Shown here in pieces: positions 9,926 to 19,906 of a stretch of 64,000 bases of DNA (position 1 is its first letter; each line of letters begins with the position of its first letter). The DNA comes from Klebsormidium nitens (lineage: Eukaryota; Plantae; Klebsormidiophyceae): assembly GCA_000708835.1 (NCBI GenBank), contig DF237030.1, positions 1-64,000 of the forward strand, given 5' to 3'. Under the pieces are notes generated by a model, which was not told the origin of the DNA, did no database searches, and saw nothing but the letters and a program-made list of their open reading frames with translations. A program made the translations under genes and the position numbers.

Positions 9926-12900
9926 ATGACTCTCGACGGATGTGTCAGTGTCATTGCTTCATCGGCCTCGCATTCTCATGAGTGCGAAGGGGGATTGTGC
10001 CCTTTCTACGGTCTTGAGATGCCGGGGCCTGACTCAGTGTATGATCCAAAGGTAAGTGTGAACTGTGCAAATGGAAGTGCTAAACCCAGCTAAAATGAAG
10101 AGTCTCTTGGGCAGCAACGACGGAAATCCAGATGCTTTCTCCAAGGCATGTGATAGTGCTTTGACTGCCCAACTAAGAGTGGGACGCATACTTGACACTG
10201 AAAAAGCATTGGGAACTGTGCGGATTTCAACAAGCAGGTTCGGAGAGAGGTATTGTGCTCCAGGATCGATTTCAAGGTGAAGGAACCTTTCAGTGGCTAC
10301 TTAGGGTTCCAGTACGTGATTTGTGACCCCCTCGAGTTACCCGCTGTGCTGCTTCACTGTTGCAACTTCTTCGGCACACCTTCTGGCCTCAAATGGGGCA
10401 AGACTTAAGGGAGGTTCACCTGACACTAAGGTTGTTTTTGCGAAGTTCTTGCTACACTTGAAATACTGGGGTGAGATGATAGAAAGGGGTCACCTGAACC
10501 GTCAGATGGACTATAAAATGCTTCTGTAAGATCATATTGTTAGTGAACTCACACCAAGAGCTGATCAGAGTTTCTTGCCAGTTTCTGCCATGTGCTCTTG
10601 GAACACTGTCCGTTTACTCCAAAACAACCTGGGCTCTTGTCGATTTCTGATTCAGACCTCTGTCACTTAACATTGCAGTGCTTTTCATTCACTTTTCCAG
10701 TGACGTACTGCTCAATGATGACGCTCCTGTAATTTATGGCCTCCACTCTAATGGTGTGCACCCAGTCTCTAATACATTTACTTTTCCAGTGACTTACTGC
10801 TCAATGATGACACTCCTGTAATCCATGGCCTCCACTCTAGTGGTGTGCACCCAGTCTCTAATAGACTGACTGCAAGCGCATTGGCAAAAGTCTGTTGGCA
10901 GCTTGGCCCTCCGTCTGAAGTGGGATGTTAAACTTGCACAATATCAAAACCCGAGTCCAAAAGGAGGTTGCGCTTGAGCTCTGAACCTGCGTGTTCCCTT
11001 CTTCTGCAGGGAGCTCCAAAGCTGCGCAATGAGGACTTCCGAATCAATGTTCTCCACAGTTACAACATTCTCGACACGGTGAGAAAACCCTGCATGATGA
11101 CCAATGAGATGTTTGGCTACTTGAACGGGCAACAGTTCGTTTGTCTTTGTTTTTACTAGATCAACTTCATAGGGCTTTGCTTTACAAGTACAACACAAAA
11201 GAGATTATGGCATGTCTGCCTTTGTTCCTTGCATGCATCTGTGCCCGCCCCCATCTGGGGAGCTAGCTTCATACAGCTGTATGAAGGTTTTCAAAGTCAT
11301 CAGCTACTGTAGCCTTTCTAGATTGGGCTTTCTTGCGTTGTCAATCATTGCCCAACTAGCAGGTGCTTCTCTTACTTTCGACTTTTGCGCAAATAATGGA
11401 ATCTTTAATGGAGATTAATCTGCTTGAGCCCCTCCTACCCACACCTTCGTAAAAGAGTCAGTCCAACTCTGAAGTCCAACTTTGTGCAGGAACCTGAAGC
11501 ACGCTTTGATCGACTCACGGCTCTAGCGGCGCGCATCTTCAAAGTAAGCAGCAAATTTGCAACCATTTTTCCGGCTTTACAGGGTGAACAGCAAGACTAG
11601 ACATGTGTGTCCCTTGGTTGTTATTCAAGAAGTTGTTGCTTGTGTCGGAGGCAATCTTAGTTAGGATCATTGCATTGGCTGGGTCTGTAAGATGGTTTAG
11701 GTGGTCAAAGTTGCGGGGCAGTTCAATTTTGACTTGCCTTTCGAAGTGCAGACCGAAGCTACTCAGTTTGCTGGTGTATATTGAAGGCGAAACTTCTGTT
11801 GCAGGCAAAAGCTTCGTTGGTCACCCTTGTTGACTCGGAGCGCGTATTTTTCAAGTCAAACACGGGATCCTTTGAAGGCTGCGGAGAGGTTCCTCGCAGT
11901 ACCTCGTTCTGCCCCTTCGTCACCCTCCCGACGTGAGATTTCTATGCACTTCATGCTTTCAGACGAGGTTCAAATGGCCATGAACTGGTCCAAAACATTA
12001 GCACAAGCTTTGCGCTGGAATCGTTTCTCCCATGCTTCGATGCGAATCATCCAGTTGCATTGGCCTGTCTCTGACGCTTCGGAGATTGAGCACATGGGAG
12101 TCATACGTGTGCTTGGAGAAGTCTAGACGGACCCGCTGATTGCTCGTACGGTTGTTGCCCCAACAGAAGATGTGCTGTTTCGCTTATCTCGCTTTCTTGT
12201 TTTCCTCAGATCCAAGCCCTGCTTAGTGGTGCTGGACGCATCCAAAGACGGTCGCTTCCACAAGAACCCCTTGGTGCGTTCTCATTCGAAAAGCCTCTCA
12301 TGAAGCAAGTAGGAGGGACAATATATCTTGCAGGCACGGTTCCACCGTAATTTTCTGGCCCTTATGGTTCTTCAGCAGATTGTATGGCTTTGAGCTCGAT
12401 AGACTCTTTCTGTACATGAAGAGGGTCGGCATACTTGTGGGTGTCCTGCATTCTATTTGGGTCTGTTGTTCTATAATATGGTCCATGATTCCCTGGCTCT
12501 CATCGTCTATTCGAGAACTTCTCGGGGGTTAGACGAACGGGTCTATCTTGGCTGCGCCGTATCTCCGAGCAGAGTGTCTAATCCGCATTCGGATCGTTCA
12601 AGCATTTCGGCGATACTTCCTCATTGAAAACACCATACGAGAAGTGGTCAAGTCCCAGTACTTCGTAGTTTGAGCACGCATGCTGAAAAGAACCTGGATT
12701 TTACAGGTTTGCGGAGAGCCGCACATGCGCTTCTATGCAGGCGTGCCCCTCGAGACGGAAGGAGGCTTCGTCTTGGGCTCCTTGTAAGCTCTTGTGTCAC
12801 TCAATCCTCGTGATCCTGCCATGGACCAGCTGCTTATTCGGATTGTTGTTAGGCTGTACTTTCGCTGTGACGGCCTGTTGCAAGAACCTAGTGTCGTCTG

Positions 12901-15900
12901 GTCCTGTGAACTCAGGAAACAGGTCTTGGAAACTGTCTGTCGTGTTCGGTCACGGCGAGTTTAATCGTCAGACCTAATGGCGATTCAACAGCAATGGCAC
13001 TCAATGGCACTGAATGGCACTCAAACACGTCGTCCTTCGTGCACCTCTGTGAGTGGTTTAACAGCTAAGTGGAATCTGGACGTGTTTGCCTTGGTCCTTT
13101 GGAAATTGAACAGTACCTAAAGCTCTGTCCGACAAGTCTTCTCATCTTCTTTCAGCTGCATCGTCGACTTCGAACCTCGAGAGAGCTTCTCCGAGGAAGA
13201 ACAAGAGATGCTGGTTGGGCTGGCGAAACTAGCTATCCAGGTACGCTTCTCCCCTTTTCGAAACGACCAATGTGTTTCTGCAAAAAGCTTGTTTTGCTCT
13301 TCTGAGCCACCACTACTTGACGCTTTCTCTTCTGAAAAGGATGATGACGGAAGCGGGCTCTTGATCGTGGGAACTCTCTCCCGACGCTTTCCGTCAATTT
13401 CGAGCAGCAATATTTCGAGGCTCATATTGCTTAAGCTTTAGTACAATAAACCTTGTATACTCCTCTCTCTGCAGGAGATTGAGAAGCACAACCGTGCCGC
13501 AGAGCTCCAACGGCTGCAACAGAAGAAGTTTGAGGAGGACAAGCGGGGGCTGCTGCAGGCAATAGGTGCGAAAACATGAGACATATGCGTTGACAAAATG
13601 TTCAAGCGTCGTCACAGAACTTCCGTTTCCAACCAAAGTGGTCCAATTCGTTGCAAAAGCAGCACACTCATCCGGCGTGCAGGAAGCAACACTTTTCGAC
13701 GTTGCAGAGTGGCAGAACTTCAAGTCGTTTTTTTCACTCAGCGGACACCGGAAACTAAAATGGAAGCTCGTCTCTTTCTGGTTGCAGACGCTTTCAGCGA
13801 GGGCCTGGTGTTGGTCGACGTGTCCCAGAAGGGGCAGCCCATCGTGTTTGTGAACGAGGGGTGGGAGAAGATCACGGGGTACTCGGCAAACGAGTCGCGC
13901 GGGCAACACTGCGGCAGTCTGCTGCAGGTGAGCCTCGTCTCCCTGAAGAACGTTGCCCTGTGCTGCTTACGACGTGTGAGCAGGGATCCAAGTTTTGTTG
14001 GAGGACATCAAACACTCTTTTTATGCATTCTGCTGTACATCTGCCCGTTGCAGCCCCCGCAATGCCTCAAAAAGGTTGTCGTTCACGGAACTGAGTCCTT
14101 CTCTGGAGGTCTCGAGGCTCTCAACAAGGGTCGTGGAATTGAAAACCGTATTGGGGCGCACATGCACTTGGTGGGAGAACGCAGTGAAAAAAGTGACAAA
14201 AAAACTTTGTAGAGCTGTGGTCAAATATCGCAGGCTGCCCAAAAGTCTGAAGACTGGATCTAAGGACCGTCGGTTTTTGACTACAGGGGCCTCTGACCTC
14301 TTTGGAAACCACGCACACGATCACGCAAGCGTGCAAAGAAGGGCGACCAGCTTCGGTGGAGATCCTGAATTACCGGAAGGACGGGACACCCTTCTGGAAC
14401 TGGCTCAGGATACGGCCCGTGGAGGGGAGCAACTTTGGGCTGAGCGAAGATACCCGGAACGGGCAGGGGAGGTGAGCTGGCCATCGGAAGAACTGTCAGC
14501 CGCTTGCATCGTTTTCCTAGCTGCGTTTCCCAAGGAATCGCACCTGCAGCGAGGTCCTCGTCGATGAAAGGAAGAACGCTTTGCAGCTCTGGAAGGTTGT
14601 GCTGGAGCGGAGGAGAAGGATGAAAGAGGAATCGTGGAGATTTTTGGACAACATATCTGTCAGGCAGTTGGTCTCTCATAATCCGTAAGGTTTGAAGAGG
14701 GCTCGAGCACAGCTTTCGGCCCTGAAGAGCAGGTCGCTTTGCGACGTGACTCCCTTTCGTGCTTCTTTGCTGGGTATGACGCTTTGTTTTGCAAGAAGTC
14801 TTCCAGTCTTCGAGTGATTCTCTGCAACAATCTGGTCGCGGAGAAGTGAAGGCACTCAGGAAGCTTCCGAGGATCGAGAGGCAGAGCTTCCTTTCTGGTC
14901 AATTACGATGGGTACCAAAGCAGTACGGAAGAAGTGGAGTTGGCAAGGCCTTTGAAGAAGAGAAGGCAATCTTGACTCATCGACGGGCTGGAAAGCTGGT
15001 TTGTCCTAGCGTTCAAGTGTTTTTGTATCGGTTGAACTCAAAGTTGAGATTTGGAGCAATGAATTTTGCACCTCCGCTTACAGGTACTACTTTGGCATCC
15101 TGTCCGACTGCACCCGAAGGAAGGAGAAGGAACTAGAGTTGGAAGCGATCCGGTTGCGCGAGCTGGAAGCCGAAGCCTCCGTGCGGGCCAAGCGCTCCTT
15201 TGTCGCAAACATCAGTCACGAGCTTCGGACGTAAGTGTAGATATCTATGTCGGACGAAACTTGACACGTGTCGGTTAGTGAGAGGGCGAAGTCGAAAGGC
15301 GCTTCCTTTGAGCGACTGTAAAGGGGACCAGTCGGAGTATGAGCTTTTGCGAGTGTAACAGAACGGATCTCCGAAAGCAGATAGTGCGTTCTTTGCACGT
15401 CCCATTGCTTCTGAATGTCTGGGAGCTGCATTCCGAGTCCGGAGCACGAGATGGAAGGCAGCATCAGGTGTTTTGTGACAGAGGCTGTCAGGAACTCACT
15501 GGGACAGGTTTGTGAATCTTGCAGAGAAGGAACATGTCATTTGATAAAATGAACTATCAAAATTTGGAGTCTGCGGTCAAACTCAGAAGGCCAGCGTCGC
15601 TGACGTACGTTATGTGACAAGCCGTTCAAGATATCACTTCATCTCTAACGTTCAGGAGCGACTAGTGCTATAGCGGTTCGTCACTCCTACAAAGATATCG
15701 TCCACACCCCGCTCGTCTGTGGCAGCTACTTTCCTTGCGCTTGCCGCCGTCAGTGAACGGCAATAGCAATTGGTCCTTCTACACCAAACTTTTCTATCTC
15801 CAGTCGGACGGGTGAATGAGATCACCAAAGAAGTAAGACTCATTGACAATACCCCTCCTTTGCGCAGTCCGATGAACGCGATCCTGGCCTGTAGTCAGCT

Positions 15901-18900
15901 GCTGACGGACATGCCCTCGCTCACTGACGACCAACGGGAGCTCTCCAGAATGATCCAGGGGTCGGGGCAACAGCTGCTACGGCTGATCAACGACATCCTA
16001 GATTTCAGCAAGGTGCGTTTTTGTCGTATTGTCACCCATCTTCCGAGTCGACGTCTGTCATGCTCTCATGAGTGATTGTGGCTTCGGCCAGCAAATACTA
16101 ACTGACATGAAAGGGCATGCTTGACAGAACAAAGAGACACTACATCGGAGCAACTCTTATGTTGTTTGGTCAACATGAATCAGTTGGATTGAAGGGCCTG
16201 AGCTTTTCTTGTTCTTTTCAGTGCATGCTTGAACGATGGCCAATTGCACGGATTCAGGTTGTGGGTCCTGCCTAGCCTGCGCAGCCTTAAACCCTGCAGC
16301 AAGCTTAGACTCTGCATACTGCACTTGCTTCTGCTCGCGTCCTGACCCTTCGTTATTCGTTTCTCAACCAGATGGATGCTGGGAAGATGGAGCTCAGATG
16401 CGCTGAGTTCAATCTGTGGGGCTGTCTCGACTACTGCGTCGAGATGCTGGCGATGCGCTGCGAGAGCAAGGGCCTCGACCTCTCATACAACATGGATGAG
16501 AGCGTGCCAGAGTGAGCACTCCAGCCTCCGATGGGCTCTTCTTTTCCACTCCCTCGGACTTGCACTCATAGTTGGTACTGGCCTGCCGTTTGTTCGTGTT
16601 TCTGACTGGAGGCGTGTACGAGCTTCTTTTGCAGAGGTCGTCGCTTTCCGCTCTCATCTTTTGCACCGCAAACTCAGCGCGTTGGCTGGCAGAGTTTCTC
16701 GCAGTATCGGATATCAAGACGCACGTGAGCGCTATTTTTCTGCAGAACTAATTCGCTTCTCATTTCGGCGGAATCTTTCGCAAGCTGAACCTATGCTGCC
16801 AAGGCTGCTCTGCTCATCGAGAGTCTTATTTTCCTTCTGTCATTGTTAACTGACCGAGCCTTTCTGACGTGCTTTCACCGACCTTTGCAACATCTTGGTA
16901 AGTCCGAAGCCCAAAGTCCTCTTGCTTTCAGGACATGCTTCGAGAAATCTGCATCAGACTGCAGCGAGGCTGTGTAGTGCACAAAAGTTCAATATCGCAT
17001 CCCTTTCCGTTCTACAGCTGGATTTGGGCAGACGACGTTCGGCTGAGCCAGATCCTGACCAACCTGCTGAGCAACGCCGCAAAGTTCACGGAGGAGGGCG
17101 GAGAGATCGAGGTTTCAGTCAGCGCCGTCAGGCGCTCTCCGAGACGCACTTCCTCGGACGGAGCGGGCGCCCCCAGTTCCGCCGGACGGAATTCCGCCCC
17201 GGAAAACAGCGCCCATCTGCCCGAGTACGAGGTCACCTTCGCGGTTCGCGACACGGGGATCGGCATCCCGGCAGCGTTCCAGGAGGTGCTCTTCGACGCG
17301 TTCACGCAGTGCGACAACTCACGGACGAAGAAGTACGAAGGTGGGTTGACTCTAGCCGTTTGCTCTTCGTGTGTCATCCCGCTTTTGGCGCAGATTCAGA
17401 CAAAAATTAGCACAACTGGGGCCCGTCTCTGAGTGTGTGTTCTACTGCTGTATGGACGTTCTGTCATACTCACTGGAAACCGCATGGTTGCAAAGGCCTG
17501 CAGAGGCCCACAAAGTGCTTATACATCAAGTCATCAAGGTGTTCGGCTGAGAGCTTGTGTTGATTTGGAAAGTTGTTGTTTAGGTGGTTAGCATCCTGTG
17601 TGTTTGACCTCTTCTTTTTGCTTTTCATCAGGTACCGGGCTGGGTCTTGCGATCAGCAGAGATTTGGCAGAACGGATGGGGGGAAGAATGTGGGTAGAGA
17701 GCGAAGAAGGCAAGGGGAGCACCTTCTATGTGTCGATCTTCGCGCGTGGCTCCATGCGAGAGTCCTCGGGTGTCGCCCTTTCCCCGGAGCAAGCAGTGTG
17801 TAGAGCGGCGACACCTGTCACTGGAAAGCGGGCTCTGCTTGTGGGCGGAAGAAACACGTTCCAGAGAATGGTCGGATCTATGTTGAGAGTCTGGGGGCTG
17901 GAAGTGTCTGTTGCTGCGTCTGTTGAAGAGTTGCACGGTTTGTTGGGTCCGGCGGAGAAGGGCAGGTTGCAGGCGCCCAGTAACGGACGAAAGTTCGTGC
18001 GGGTAGACGTGGGCGGTTCTCAGGGCAAGCCGTTCGACGTTGTGATCGTCGATTGCTTCGATACGGTTAAGCGTACCAAACACGGGCGAAAGGGCGCCGT
18101 CGATGGGGGCGCGAACGGGCGGACGGCACCCGCCGATCTGGTGGCCTTGGGGTGCCAGCTGGCAGAACGAGTGCCCACGTTCCTGCTGACGTCAAAGGAT
18201 ACGAAGAGCCTCATAAGCCAATGGGCGGACATGGTAAGAGACCTCGCAGTGTTTTTGATCTGCCCATAGATCAAGCATCTCAACCGTTTCCTTCACCTGA
18301 TCGACGGTTCAATTCTGACTCGCCCAATGCCCTGAAAGGCCCCTTGCGGTTTCCGGTCCAACAATGCTGCCCTTTGAAGCAACCAGGCCGATTTTCGGTT
18401 GATCAGCCCGACTATGTTGCATCATTCAGCTTGACCGTTGGTCCTTTCCGAGCGCTGTATCAAAGTCGCCACCGTCCGAATTCTGCTTTGCGTGCCGGCT
18501 GTACTTTTCGGCGTCCCTCATATGAAAATCTTACTTACTGGACTTGTCCTTACAACATGCAAACAGGCTTGACGTTGCTTGTGTGCTCCGGATGAAAAGC
18601 TAGTAATCGGTCATCTGCAGCAAACTTATACTGGTCAAAGAAACGGTTCGTGGCCTTTTCATCAGCCGCTGAGTGTCAAATTAATAGCAGTACCGCTCTT
18701 TTGATCACAACGCCCCTTTGGCCAGCTCCGTTGCAGGACTGTTTCAACAAACTGTCTGGCTCTTGCTTGCATCGCCTTAGCAAACGCTGTGTCTGTTTAT
18801 CTGCAGGAGAACGCCGTCTGCTTATCCCGGTCAATCCGGATCAACCTCCTGTACGCTACGCTTCTCCAGAGGCTCGCACACCAAGACCCGCTCTCTCCCT

Positions 18901-19906
18901 TAACCACCCCTCGTTCCCTGCTAGACTCGATAGCCTCAGATTACGCAGAAGGGGGGGACGCAACCAGCCTGGAAATCCTAGTGGTTGAGGACAACAAAGT
19001 GAACCAGCGGGTGCTGAACAAGGTCCTCAAGTCGCTTGACTACGACAAAATCCGGACGGCTGGGAATGGGCGTGAAGTCTTGGAGTTGTTGCGGCAGCAG
19101 CCTGCTGACGTGGTGCTGATGGACGTCCAGATGCCAGGTCAGATTCCGTAGTTGACTCTCCATTGCCCTTTATCAAGCCTTGCTCACTTCAGGAGGCTAA
19201 GTCCTAAAAGCCGGATTCGAGCTGATACACTTCAAAGGTCAAACTCTGTTGCAAACGGTTGAGGAGGCTGTCTTGCACCGGTGGTTCGACTGGTGAATCT
19301 TACAGATGATTCATTGGATGCCATCGTTTCACTTGTCGTAATGAGTGGCCCCTCCTTTCCTGCAGAGATGGACGGGCTAACGGCAACCACGCGAATCAAG
19401 GTGTGTTGATCTGTCATCGCATGGTCTGCGTTGAGTTCGGTTGTCTGATCAGTACGCGTGCGAAGGACCTGTTTTTAGAGGAGCGACCGCAGGCGCCTCT
19501 TTTGGAGTGTGCCGCACTGCCAGGAATGCCGCCCTCGGCCAACTTCGACGGGTTACAAACCTCCGACCCTCTTGTCCCTTGTTGTTCTCTCCTGTTGGAA
19601 TGGTTAGGCCTTCCTGGCGATCATTCCACTCCCTGCTCGTTATCCCGTTTGTGTGACGCTGCTTAATATGAACTTTCACCGAGCCAATTGCAGGCCGACA
19701 TTTCCGACGAGGACCAGCCCATGGTGATTGCCCTGACGGCCGACGTGGGGAACGACATAGAGAAGGAGTGTCGAGAAGCCGGGATGATCTCGTACCTGTC
19801 AAAGCCGGTCCAAAAGTCGAAATTGGAAAAGTTGCTTGCGAAGTGCGGGTATTACAAGCAGCACCGGTCAGAGCGGAAGATGTTGAAGTGGATAGACGCA
19901 AGTTAG
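9926..19906 (+). CDS. Hybrid sensor histidine kinase GAF-PAS(LOV-like)-HisKA-HATPase_c-pseudoREC-REC; 18 exons, about 984 aa
   Basis: Exons 9926-10051, 11010-11078, 11490-11543, 11805-11932, 12210-12273, 12707-12783, 13156-13240, 13475-13565, 13788-13927, 14287-14471, 15084-15230, 15868-16012, 16372-16511, 17018-17340, 17632-18233, 18807-19137, 19366-19400, 19694-19906 join in frame. Motifs: GAF ([25 protein letters not shown]), H-box ISHELRTPMN, N-box LLSNAAKF, G1 DTGIGI, G2 GGTGLGL, receiver LVVEDN / LMDVQMP / ALTA / LSKP. The first exon is the least certain. Confidence 0.92.
10686..10863. repeat. 89-bp tandem duplication in intron 1 of the kinase
   Basis: Units at 10686-10774 and 10775-10863 (acttttccagtgac...cccagtctctaata) differ by only a few substitutions. 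Confidence 0.9.

Follow-up and report, generated by a model that had tools for sequence, protein, structure and literature searches.

The PAS domain of the Klebsormidium nitens protein GAQ81462.1 is derived from a LOV domain, with the two halves of the LOV pocket in different states. The flavin-ring half is kept, including both Asn residues, the Gln of the Leu-Gln-Gly-Pro motif and the Cys, while the ribityl/phosphate half is rebuilt by the replacement of Asn by His, the loss of Arg from either phosphate position and the insertion of one residue. GAQ81462.1 is a soluble hybrid histidine kinase in which this PAS domain is the sensor domain, and it belongs to a conserved family so far found only in Klebsormidiophyceae and Zygnematophyceae. 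On the strength of the sequence we suggest tentatively, with a probability of roughly 0.45, that the domain responds to light or redox state through a flavin, in a non-canonical way.

Gene structure and expression

The positions below are those of the window, that is, of the whole stretch of 64,000 nucleotides of contig DF237030.1 that was analysed.

10019..19906, + strand: the whole coding sequence of the hybrid histidine kinase, in 18 GT-AG exons whose translation of 953 aa equals K. nitens GAQ81462.1 (exact spliced mapping)
11010..13240, + strand: GAF domain, the upstream input, in six exons, aa 36-171 (Pfam GAF, 45.5 bits; joints present in RNA contigs)
13475..13565, + strand: exon of the helical GAF-to-PAS linker, aa 171-201 (joints 13237>13472 and 13563>13786 in four runs)
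13788..13927, + strand: PAS exon A, A-beta to E-alpha, aa 201-247 (PAS_9, 26.7 bits, profile positions 3-40; joint 13924>14284 in contigs)
13910..13912, + strand: TGC codon of Cys242, at the position of the LOV adduct Cys (phmmer and MAFFT alignment to the Cys of NCRFLQG)
14287..14471, + strand: PAS exon B, Gly-Pro, F-alpha, G-beta, H-beta and the long H-beta/I-beta loop, aa 248-309 (PAS_9, 26.1 bits)
15084..15230, + strand: exon C, I-beta, Asp-Cys-Thr, coiled-coil linker and H-box, aa 309-358 (translation; HisKA starts at aa 344; joint 14469>15082 in contigs)
15868..17740 (end approximate), + strand: the remainder of HisKA (up to aa 410), then HATPase_c (aa 458-596) (Pfam HisKA 76.5 bits, HATPase_c 95.6 bits)
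18975..19840 (approximate), + strand: C-terminal receiver (REC), aa 818-931 (Pfam Response_reg, 93.6 bits)

The reading frames of exons A, B and C begin at 13790, 14287 and 15085, and all introns are of the GT..AG type. Exon A ends in Gly-Gln-His-Cys-Gly-Ser-Leu-Leu-Gln. Exon B continues with Gly-Pro-Leu-Thr through a further block of 11 residues and carries the codons of Asn275 (14368-14370) and Asn285 (14398-14400), and exon C reads Tyr-Tyr-Phe-Gly-Ile-Leu-Ser-Asp, followed by the linker and the H-box, with the codons of Leu315 at 15100-15102 and of His354 at 15217-15219. The peptide strings quoted in the preliminary description of this DNA are present in the window in the order given there, and the splicing proposed in it from the genomic letters joins exons A, B and C exactly as the intron-less RNA contigs do. 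These contigs of about 3.2 kb, obtained from four runs belonging to four studies, skip the introns precisely at the PAS exons and have zero base differences. Because the contigs from four studies lack exactly these introns, the splicing is real and the gene is expressed. A K. nitens high-light transcriptome paper leaves the gene unmentioned.

Domain architecture and LOV ancestry

According to Pfam, GAQ81462.1 is composed of GAF, PAS_9, HisKA, HATPase_c and REC domains, in this order. All the attributes of a hybrid HisKA-type histidine kinase are present, namely the acceptor His (His354, within a Ser-His-Glu-Leu-Arg-Thr-Pro box), the N, G1, F and G2 boxes, legible as the Asn, Asp-x-Gly-x-Gly, Phe and Gly-x-Gly-x-Gly boxes, and a C-terminal receiver with its acceptor Asp and the associated receiver motifs. 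The kinase part itself is ordinary. For the GAF domain, the closest solved structure is the GAF domain of a diguanylate cyclase (4zmu, E = 5.5e-25).

The PAS exons were queried singly at first, and then as the public protein GAQ81462.1, in which they are contiguous. Scoring against PAS_9, which the preliminary description had proposed as a check, gave 53.3 bits for the contiguous protein at a gathering cut-off of 27, the single exons falling just below it (26.7 and 26.1). In a phmmer search against the PDB, the best 60 of the 148 matches listed were LOV domains or proteins built with them (best E = 4e-23), and exon B on its own also had a LOV domain as its best match (E = 2e-12). The best 50 Foldseek matches were all LOV-domain structures, with TM scores of 0.73-0.85, and the closest domains outside the family are almost all canonical LOV domains with NCRFLQG, at 37-45% identity. 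The domain is therefore a PAS fold with its closest relatives, in both sequence and structure, among LOV domains. Bacterial multi-PAS repeats, whose motif Gly-[Lys/Arg]-Lys-Pro-Gly-x-Phe-Leu-Gln-Gly has the extra residue and the Gly in common with our domain, were also considered as its origin; we rejected this descent, as canonical LOV ranks first in whole-domain BLAST and the repeats are without the second Asn.

The earlier assignment of this locus to a GAF-PAS hybrid kinase with a LOV derivative is borne out by the Pfam order, phmmer, Foldseek and the nearest relatives alike. Its architecture was also rightly set apart from the canonical plant photoreceptors, being different from those of phototropin, ZTL/FKF1 and the PAS/LOV proteins.

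The pocket of the PAS domain

An alignment of 16 canonical LOV sequences has 16 invariant columns, and GAQ81462.1 agrees with 13 of them. Cys242 aligns with the adduct Cys of LOV domains, and the AlphaFold models place it similarly: E-alpha starts at the Cys, four residues past D-alpha, as it does in the model of a canonical phototropin LOV2. Also kept are Gln247-Gly-Pro and the two Asn residues that contact the isoalloxazine ring (Asn482/Asn492 in AsLOV2 numbering), represented here by Asn275 and Asn285.

The consensus Asn449, which precedes the Cys and binds the ribityl chain, is replaced by His241, and one residue is inserted in E-alpha after Cys242. In LOV structures the FMN phosphate is bound by Arg451 and Arg467 (AsLOV2 numbering); the corresponding positions of GAQ81462.1 are occupied by Gly243/Ser244 and by Thr260, so that no Arg is found at either of them. 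The active-site Gln on I-beta is replaced by Leu315, and the H-beta/I-beta loop, with a pLDDT below 50, exceeds that of canonical LOV domains by 13-17 residues.

Among the 240 Cys-bearing LOV-like domains that we sampled outside the family, the first Arg is present in 212 (88%) and the second is missing in 35%; both are missing together in only 12, Leu stands in place of the Gln in 18, and an insertion at the site of the first Arg was seen in only two.

The LOV filter of Dietler et al. 2022 demands at least eight of nine residues (Gly59, Asn61, Cys62, Arg63, Phe64, Leu65, Gln66, Asn94 and Asn104 in YtvA numbering). By our own alignment GAQ81462.1 keeps six of the nine (Gly, Cys, Leu, Gln, Asn and Asn) and thus falls short of the filter by which the natural Gln-deficient LOV set was defined; the failing residues are Asn61, which is His, Arg63, which is Gly/Ser with the insertion, and Phe64, which is Leu. 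Natural and engineered LOV receptors with Leu for Gln keep their photochemistry and signalling (PMC9098866), as the preliminary description had supposed for Gln-less LOV domains. The natural Gln-deficient receptors carry Leu or another residue at the position of Leu315, and one of them was shown to be a blue-light-regulated enzyme (PMC9098866), so Leu315 alone is no argument against photoreception. The preliminary description had correctly named the preserved Cys, Gln-Gly-Pro and Asn pair, the one extra residue and the change of Gln to Leu315. Its picture of a LOV domain deprived of the Gln is right as to that loss but too narrow as to the extent of the changes, having overlooked both Arg residues, the Asn before the Cys, the score of six out of nine, the longer loop and the exceptions to the Cys within the family.

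Conservation in streptophyte algae

A representative search with exon B as the query was used to collect homologues, and 21 proteins, all from Klebsormidiophyceae and Zygnematophyceae, share this pocket. We define the family by the GAF-PAS_9-HisKA-HATPase-REC order, the E-alpha motif Gly-x-[His/Lys]-[Cys]-Gly-[Ser/Ala]-x-Leu-Gln-Gly-Pro, Gly-Ile-Leu-Ser-Asp-Cys on I-beta and a distance of 37 residues from Asp to His; GAQ81462.1 has all four of these features. In the tree it is placed inside the Klebsormidiophyceae clade with 100/100 support, and Interfilum AML77083 is its direct orthologue (84-86% PAS-domain identity, tree support 100/100).

Asn285 is present in 21 of the 21 family sequences and Asn275 in 20. 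The Cys is found in 18 of the 21, the others having Asn, Asn and Ser in three separate lineages with the rest of the domain conserved; K. nitens GAQ79868.1 and Mesotaenium ME000537S08299 are among these members that lack the Cys. The preliminary description had made its proposal depend on the conservation of this Cys among orthologues: the Interfilum orthologue does retain it, but the three lineages with Asn or Ser do not. The position before the Cys is His, or Lys in desmids and Ser in one paralogue. The first phosphate position is never Arg across the family, and the second may be Thr, Arg, Ala, Lys, Gly or Asp. The active-site Gln is replaced by Leu in 18 sequences and by Cys in three. Two further Cys residues are conserved, Cys263 in F-alpha in most members and the invariant Cys of Asp-Cys-Thr.

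Between Klebsormidium and Zygnematophyceae the PAS core without the loop is 68-80% identical, compared with 62-65% for HATPase, 54-59% for REC and 53-57% for GAF; the PAS core is conserved at least as strongly as the catalytic domains. The connections on both sides of the PAS domain are of nearly fixed length. Counted from the Asp of Asp-Cys-Thr, the phospho-accepting His lies 37 residues further on in all 21 members, and this invariant spacing fits the signalling through a coiled coil that has been described for histidine kinases with LOV domains (PMC6798134). In the 19 members in which both landmarks could be located, GAF and PAS are spaced 57-59 aa apart, and the identity of this linker across the family is 62-90%.

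Possible function of the domain

On our preferred, tentative reading the PAS domain would still hold a flavin, in a non-canonical manner. His/Lys residues might take over the phosphate contacts of FMN, or the ligand may be a flavin that carries no phosphate. Blue light, acting via a Cys-flavin adduct, and/or reduction of the flavin would then alter the PAS beta-sheet, and this change would travel through the continuous coiled-coil linker to modify the autophosphorylation of His354, from which the phosphoryl group would pass to the protein's own receiver and onward to a downstream phosphorelay. The GAF domain would supply a second input via its own helix of fixed length. Several observations count against such a flavin sensor. 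The first Arg is absent throughout the family and the insertion lies at that very place; the ribityl-binding Asn is replaced by His, Lys or Ser; the second Arg position is widely variable, and only six of the nine residues of the Dietler et al. filter are kept. In addition, the threefold replacement of the Cys within an otherwise intact domain is unusual for adduct-based photoreceptors.

A flavin sensor in this domain, with a photocycle, would be a natural LOV with a lengthened E-alpha that works although the Arg clamp and the active-site Gln are missing, which would be of interest for LOV mechanism and for the design of optogenetic tools. [quoted passage not shown] One may go further and suppose that a flavin bound in the absence of the usual phosphate clamp (riboflavin perhaps, or FMN with His/Lys contacts) and of the signalling Gln, the output being merged with the GAF signal in one hybrid kinase, would represent a second, mechanistically distinct LOV photochemistry, which disappeared when embryophytes arose or earlier; we find this extension unlikely.

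The most serious competitor, although in our estimation a rather doubtful one, is a degenerate LOV domain that binds no cofactor any more and acts as a dimerising relay from the GAF sensor to the kinase, with the LOV motifs kept for folding and packing only. PAS domains adjoining the DHp helix of histidine kinases are often without a known ligand, and the helices of fixed length on both sides are what a pure transmitter module would need. The loss of both phosphate Arg residues and of the ribityl Asn, the insertion in E-alpha, the dispensability of the Cys in three lineages and the low score on the published LOV filter all agree with such a relay. The near invariance of two buried polar Asn residues and of the Gln of Leu-Gln-Gly-Pro from Klebsormidium to desmids, however, is hard to explain without a hydrogen-bonded ligand, and a PAS core at least as conserved as every other module of the protein does not speak for a relay either. 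The bacterial Lys-Pro-Gly PAS repeats make the same point from the other side, as they have the extra residue but drop the second Asn. If the pocket is empty, the family would offer a well-dated case of the decay of a photosensor into a relay module with the ring-binding residues persisting.

Quite improbable in our view is a LOV descendant with a changed ligand, in which the Asn pair would hold another planar heterocycle or the His-Cys pair would form a flavin-free thiol, metal or redox sensor. It would account for the fact that the phosphate/ribityl side alone is rebuilt, with the side that reads a uracil-like edge kept, and that His-Cys or Lys-Cys followed by an almost invariant Gly forms a family-specific motif, accompanied by two more conserved Cys residues (Cys263 of F-alpha and that of Asp-Cys-Thr). 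The sequence nevertheless points to no specific candidate ligand. Since the His gives way to Lys in desmids and to Ser in a single paralogue, and the Cys itself also varies within the family, fixed metal or heme ligation is unlikely. We know of no precedent for a domain of the LOV clade with a non-flavin ligand. A preprint on a heme-binding PAS domain was considered as a precedent for a ligand switch and dropped, the PAS domain described there not being LOV-derived.

A resemblance by chance, wrong splicing or a pseudogene could be argued only from the single-exon scores slightly below the PAS_9 cut-off, and all three can be practically dismissed in view of the exactly spliced contigs from four studies, the intact frame of 953 aa identical to the annotated protein, the best PDB match at E = 4e-23 and the 21 conserved homologues.

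Relation to the published record and to known systems

Relatives from the 1KP project are present in GenBank under the name 'putative LOV domain-containing protein' (AML77083, AML77081, AML77099, AML79120 and AML79123). The 2016 LOV survey of Glantz et al. is reportedly the source of such deposits. Five LOV-like histidine kinases of K. nitens, KniteHK15/19/23/28/34, were listed by Kabbara et al. 2018. As far as the available parts of these sources go, the 1KP entries and the five KniteHK proteins belong to the same family as GAQ81462.1, itself perhaps one of the five, and their records are catalogue entries in which the rebuilt pocket is not described and neither a function nor a test for a cofactor is given. 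The novelty claimed in the preliminary description was overstated. Our literature search found no cofactor or light-response data for any family member, and the available part of the supplementary text of Dietler et al. 2022 (PMC9098866) yielded no entry for Klebsormidium, Interfilum or Closterium. The family is thus no new discovery, and the variant of the pocket appears to be undescribed.

Among the matches listed, the best in sequence (E = 4e-23 to 1e-14) and in structure (TM 0.74-0.85) were bacterial and engineered LOV proteins: the LOV domains of Meiothermus ruber Mrub_1259 (9vf7) and Chloroflexus aggregans Cagg_3753 (6rhg), Erythrobacter EL346 (4r3a), the Brucella LOV-HK (3t50/6pps) and the engineered YF1 (4gcz). 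The Cys, Gln-Gly-Pro and the two ring Asn residues are common to this set and GAQ81462.1, and the full-length bacterial LOV kinases and YF1 share a LOV-type PAS domain just upstream of the dimerisation helix and a helical linker ending in Asp-x-Thr. Unlike GAQ81462.1, these prokaryotic or engineered proteins have the full NCRFLQG, both phosphate Arg residues and the active-site Gln, with no insertion in E-alpha and, in the listed structures, no upstream GAF domain.

The LOV-HK of Ostreococcus tauri resembles GAQ81462.1 in being a LOV, histidine kinase and receiver protein of a eukaryotic alga, and to our knowledge it has no GAF domain. This chlorophyte protein is described as a functional blue-light receptor acting on the circadian clock (as cited in PMC6137987), and its PAS domain, compared here by the description in that source, clusters with canonical LOV domains.

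PHK1 and PHK2 of Physcomitrella are, like GAQ81462.1, streptophyte hybrid histidine kinases with PAS sensors; they have a light-related phenotype, and homologues were reported in K. nitens (Ryo et al. 2018, PMC6137987). Their architecture is PAS-PAS-HisKA-HATPase-REC, with no GAF domain and with PAS domains that fall outside the LOV group (PMC6137987), so that membership of GAQ81462.1 in this group, considered as a candidate assignment, is ruled out by its architecture of one GAF and one LOV-type PAS domain.

Cyanobacterial LOV-GAF-...-histidine kinases (e.g. P0169, P0177 and P0187) combine LOV, GAF and kinase modules as GAQ81462.1 does, and their LOV domains are among the closest relatives outside the family, at 39-44% identity. 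In these proteins, however, the order is reversed, with an N-terminal LOV followed by GAF, and the LOV domain is a canonical one with NCRFLQG, both Arg residues and the Gln.

Gene structure and expression

The window DNA is intron-rich and eukaryotic, and the peptides of the preliminary description lie in three exons:

13788-13927, forward strand: PAS exon A, GT..AG introns
14287-14471, forward strand: PAS exon B, GT..AG introns
15084-15230, forward strand: exon C, which begins the HisKA H-box

The introns between them measure 359 and 612 bases, both GT..AG, and each PAS exon on its own matches Pfam PAS_9 (exon A with 26.7 bits over profile positions 3-40, exon B with 26.1 bits over positions 46-90). 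In four public runs, each of a different study, RNA contigs some 3.2 kb long are confined to exons; they join 13563 to 13786, 13924 to 14284 and 14469 to 15082, skip seven further introns upstream and show zero base differences. The splicing of the PAS domain proposed earlier is matched exactly by these contigs, and their restriction to exons in four studies demonstrates that the spliced reading is real and that the gene is expressed. The product is K. nitens GAQ81462.1 (953 aa, our P0157), in which the three exon translations are contiguous at residues 202-357. All 953 residues map exactly, once introns are removed, onto 18 GT-AG exons spanning 10019-19906. P0157 stands for the spliced product in what follows.

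The annotated start Met lies at 10019. The Interfilum orthologue (P0158, residues 1-41) aligns in frame from 9926, where an ATG is present, and RNA contigs reach beyond 9850 on the upstream side by 488 bases or more; at its N-terminus the public GAQ81462.1 model may therefore lack about 31 residues (window 9926-10051). In run X1 a 206-base contig covers 15298-15503, in the intron after exon C, at a depth of 3.4 versus 66.6 for the mRNA contig, and is most simply unspliced pre-mRNA or trace DNA.

Domain architecture and LOV descent

Pfam domains of P0157 (residues; score)
GAF: 36-171; 45.5 bits
PAS_9: 207-297; 53.3 bits
HisKA: 344-410; 76.5 bits
HATPase_c: 458-596; 95.6 bits
Response_reg: 818-931; 93.6 bits

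This order bears out the label of GAF-PAS hybrid kinase. The GAF is not of the phytochrome type; among solved structures it comes closest to the GAF of 4zmu, a diguanylate cyclase (E = 5.5e-25).

The PAS domain of P0157 is a LOV domain by descent. A phmmer search of all PDB sequences with residues 195-325 gave 148 matches, the best 60 of which are LOV domains or LOV-built proteins, headed among those listed by the LOV domains of Meiothermus ruber Mrub_1259 (E = 4e-23) and Chloroflexus Cagg_3753. The AlphaFold model of the domain (pLDDT 85) superimposes on LOV structures with TM 0.73-0.85, and 13 of the 16 columns invariant in an alignment of 16 canonical LOV sequences are retained. When 436 LOV-like domains of all retrieved proteins were compared, the nearest outside the family proved almost all to be canonical NCRFLQG domains with 37-45% identity; these include LOV domains that stand at the N-terminus of LOV-GAF kinases in cyanobacteria. 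An artefact is excluded as an explanation. The bacterial multi-PAS proteins P0013, P0027, P0081 and P0122 carry many repeats with Gly-[Lys/Arg]-Lys-Pro-Gly-x-Phe-Leu-Gln-Gly, equal in length to the algal motif (one residue more than LOV) and sharing its Gly, but with Pro where the algae have Cys; this likeness is probably convergent, because canonical LOV domains rank higher by whole-domain similarity.

The gene belongs to a known kind and has been catalogued, though not characterised. GenBank and UniProt already list orthologues from 1KP transcriptomes under the name "putative LOV domain-containing protein", and Kabbara et al. (2018) described five K. nitens kinases with LOV-like sensing regions, suggesting later loss in land plants. 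The PAS-PAS kinases of Ryo et al. 2018 (PMC6137987) form a different family. In the papers covered we found no work on the rebuilt pocket, a cofactor test or a function for this family, and the pocket variant appears to be undescribed.

The pocket and its variation in the family

Exon B was chosen as phmmer query against 1.84 billion representatives because it lies outside the Cys motif, so that the query would not skew the choice of orthologues; it yielded full-length relatives, and the PAS region of one of them, used in a word search, gave the whole family. Twenty-one proteins have the architecture and pocket in common: three K. nitens paralogues, K. subtile, Interfilum paradoxum, three Spirogloea copies, Mesotaenium endlicherianum, Staurodesmus, Cosmarium, six Closterium entries and one EukProt transcriptome. 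They are followed in the match list by a phototropin and bacteria; no land-plant or chlorophyte member occurred in the word search, which covered proteins of 626-1990 aa sharing words with the query. The pocket is described with AsLOV2 numbering and with the residue roles of the LOV structural literature.

Pocket residues (AsLOV2; P0157; 21 family rows)
Asn449, before Cys; changed to His241; His 18, Lys 2, Ser 1
Cys450; kept as Cys242; Cys 18, Asn 2, Ser 1
Arg451, first Arg; changed to Gly243/Ser244 with one inserted residue; Arg in none (residue following Cys: Gly 20, Ser 1)
Phe452; changed to Leu
Leu453; kept as Leu
Gln454-Gly-Pro; kept as Gln247-Gly-Pro; Gln 15, Glu 5, Met 1
Arg467, second Arg; changed to Thr260; Thr, Arg, Ala, Lys, Gly or Asp (Lys or Arg in 12)
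Asn482, first ring Asn; kept as Asn275; Asn 20, His 1
Asn492, second ring Asn; kept as Asn285; Asn 21
Gln513, active-site Gln; changed to Leu315; Leu 18, Cys 3

The preliminary description is confirmed as an observation, and its interpretation is partly supported, namely as regards LOV descent and the kinase architecture. It had noted the extra residue and the loss of the Gln; it had overlooked that neither FMN-phosphate position has an Arg and that the ribityl Asn is replaced. The pocket is accordingly more altered than it supposed, with 6 of 9 residues in our alignment on the filter of Dietler et al., which demands at least eight of nine for natural LOV receptors. Each single change has natural precedent, but the combination is rare: in a set of 240 LOV-like domains that have the Cys but do not belong to the family, the first Arg is present in 212 and the second in 157; 2 carry an insertion at the first Arg position, 12 have neither Arg, and 18 have Leu for Gln.

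Sequence aligners set Cys242 opposite the adduct Cys. As an independent check, phototropin LOV2 was modelled in the same way, and the Cys opens E-alpha in either model, four residues past D-alpha; the helix runs for four residues in LOV2 and five in P0157. In these models Cys242 therefore occupies the same E-alpha position as the LOV adduct Cys, counted from the N-terminal side, the extra residue being taken up after it. This Cys is present in 18 of 21 rows, among them Interfilum AML77083, which pairs with the window gene at 100/100 in a maximum-likelihood tree. The other three have Asn or Ser and lie at three separate places in the tree, which implies no fewer than three replacements of the Cys.

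Constraint and possible mode of action

Between Klebsormidium and Zygnematophyceae the PAS core (variable H-beta/I-beta loop left out) is 68-80% identical, compared with 62-65% for HATPase, 54-59% for REC and 53-57% for GAF. Exactly 37 residues separate the Asp of Ser-Asp-Cys-Thr at the end of I-beta from the phospho-accepting His in all 21 proteins; from GAF to PAS the distance is 57-59 residues in those 19 that show both landmarks. Fixed helical linkers are a hallmark of coiled-coil signal transmission, as shown for LOV histidine kinases such as YF1 (PMC6798134). Core conservation and fixed linkers together mark the domain as a working, selected piece of the signalling route, not a decaying remnant.

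The analysis thus establishes how the gene is built and that it is expressed, the order of its domains, its LOV descent, the residues of the pocket, their conservation and the fixed linkers; what the pocket holds is inferred. Judging from its residues, we favour a flavin bound in a non-canonical manner, with a probability of roughly 45%, because the isoalloxazine-reading residues have been kept through deep time, the Cys persists in most members, and the phosphate-side substitutes are often basic (His/Lys before the Cys, Lys/Arg at the second Arg position); Leu in place of the active-site Gln is, moreover, compatible with LOV photochemistry and signalling (PMC9098866). Adduct formation by light, or flavin reduction, would then change the beta-sheet, and the 37-residue coiled coil would transmit this change and alter autophosphorylation of His354, from which the phosphoryl group would pass to the protein's own receiver domain. 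Members that lack the Cys might signal through photoreduction of the flavin instead, which has been reported for LOV receptors engineered without it. That the domain is instead a relay PAS with an empty pocket, placed between GAF and kinase, we consider less likely, and a changed ligand or thiol-based sensing is improbable. For a redox reading, two conserved residues could be relevant: Cys263 (window about 14332-14334) occupies an F-alpha position that is Ile in phototropin LOV2, with Cys shared by Klebsormidiophyceae, Spirogloea, Mesotaenium and P0039 and Val found in desmids and Closterium; Cys318 (about 15109-15111), in the Asp-Cys-Thr motif ending I-beta, is invariant in the family.

Minor observations on relatives

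The Mesotaenium protein P0041 (ME000537S08299) has 18 extra residues (472-489) between Leu-Gln and Gly-Pro, exactly at the exon A/B junction (13927/14287), which look like a short intron left unspliced in the gene model; if so, a phase-0 intron position is common to Klebsormidium and Mesotaenium. P0002, of 144 aa, was called as an ORF in prokaryote style on a Logan contig of 15,450 bases; it ends in a copy of exon B at 93% identity, which differs by a few substitutions in F-alpha and the loop. Presumably it is the same gene in a different Klebsormidium strain or species, the reading frame passing out of an intron into the exon. Some Closterium models of the family, P0161 and P0163-P0165, carry extra Pfam domains (PF03179; PF00185/PF02729 in one), which are probably annotation fusions with neighbouring genes and not true architectures.
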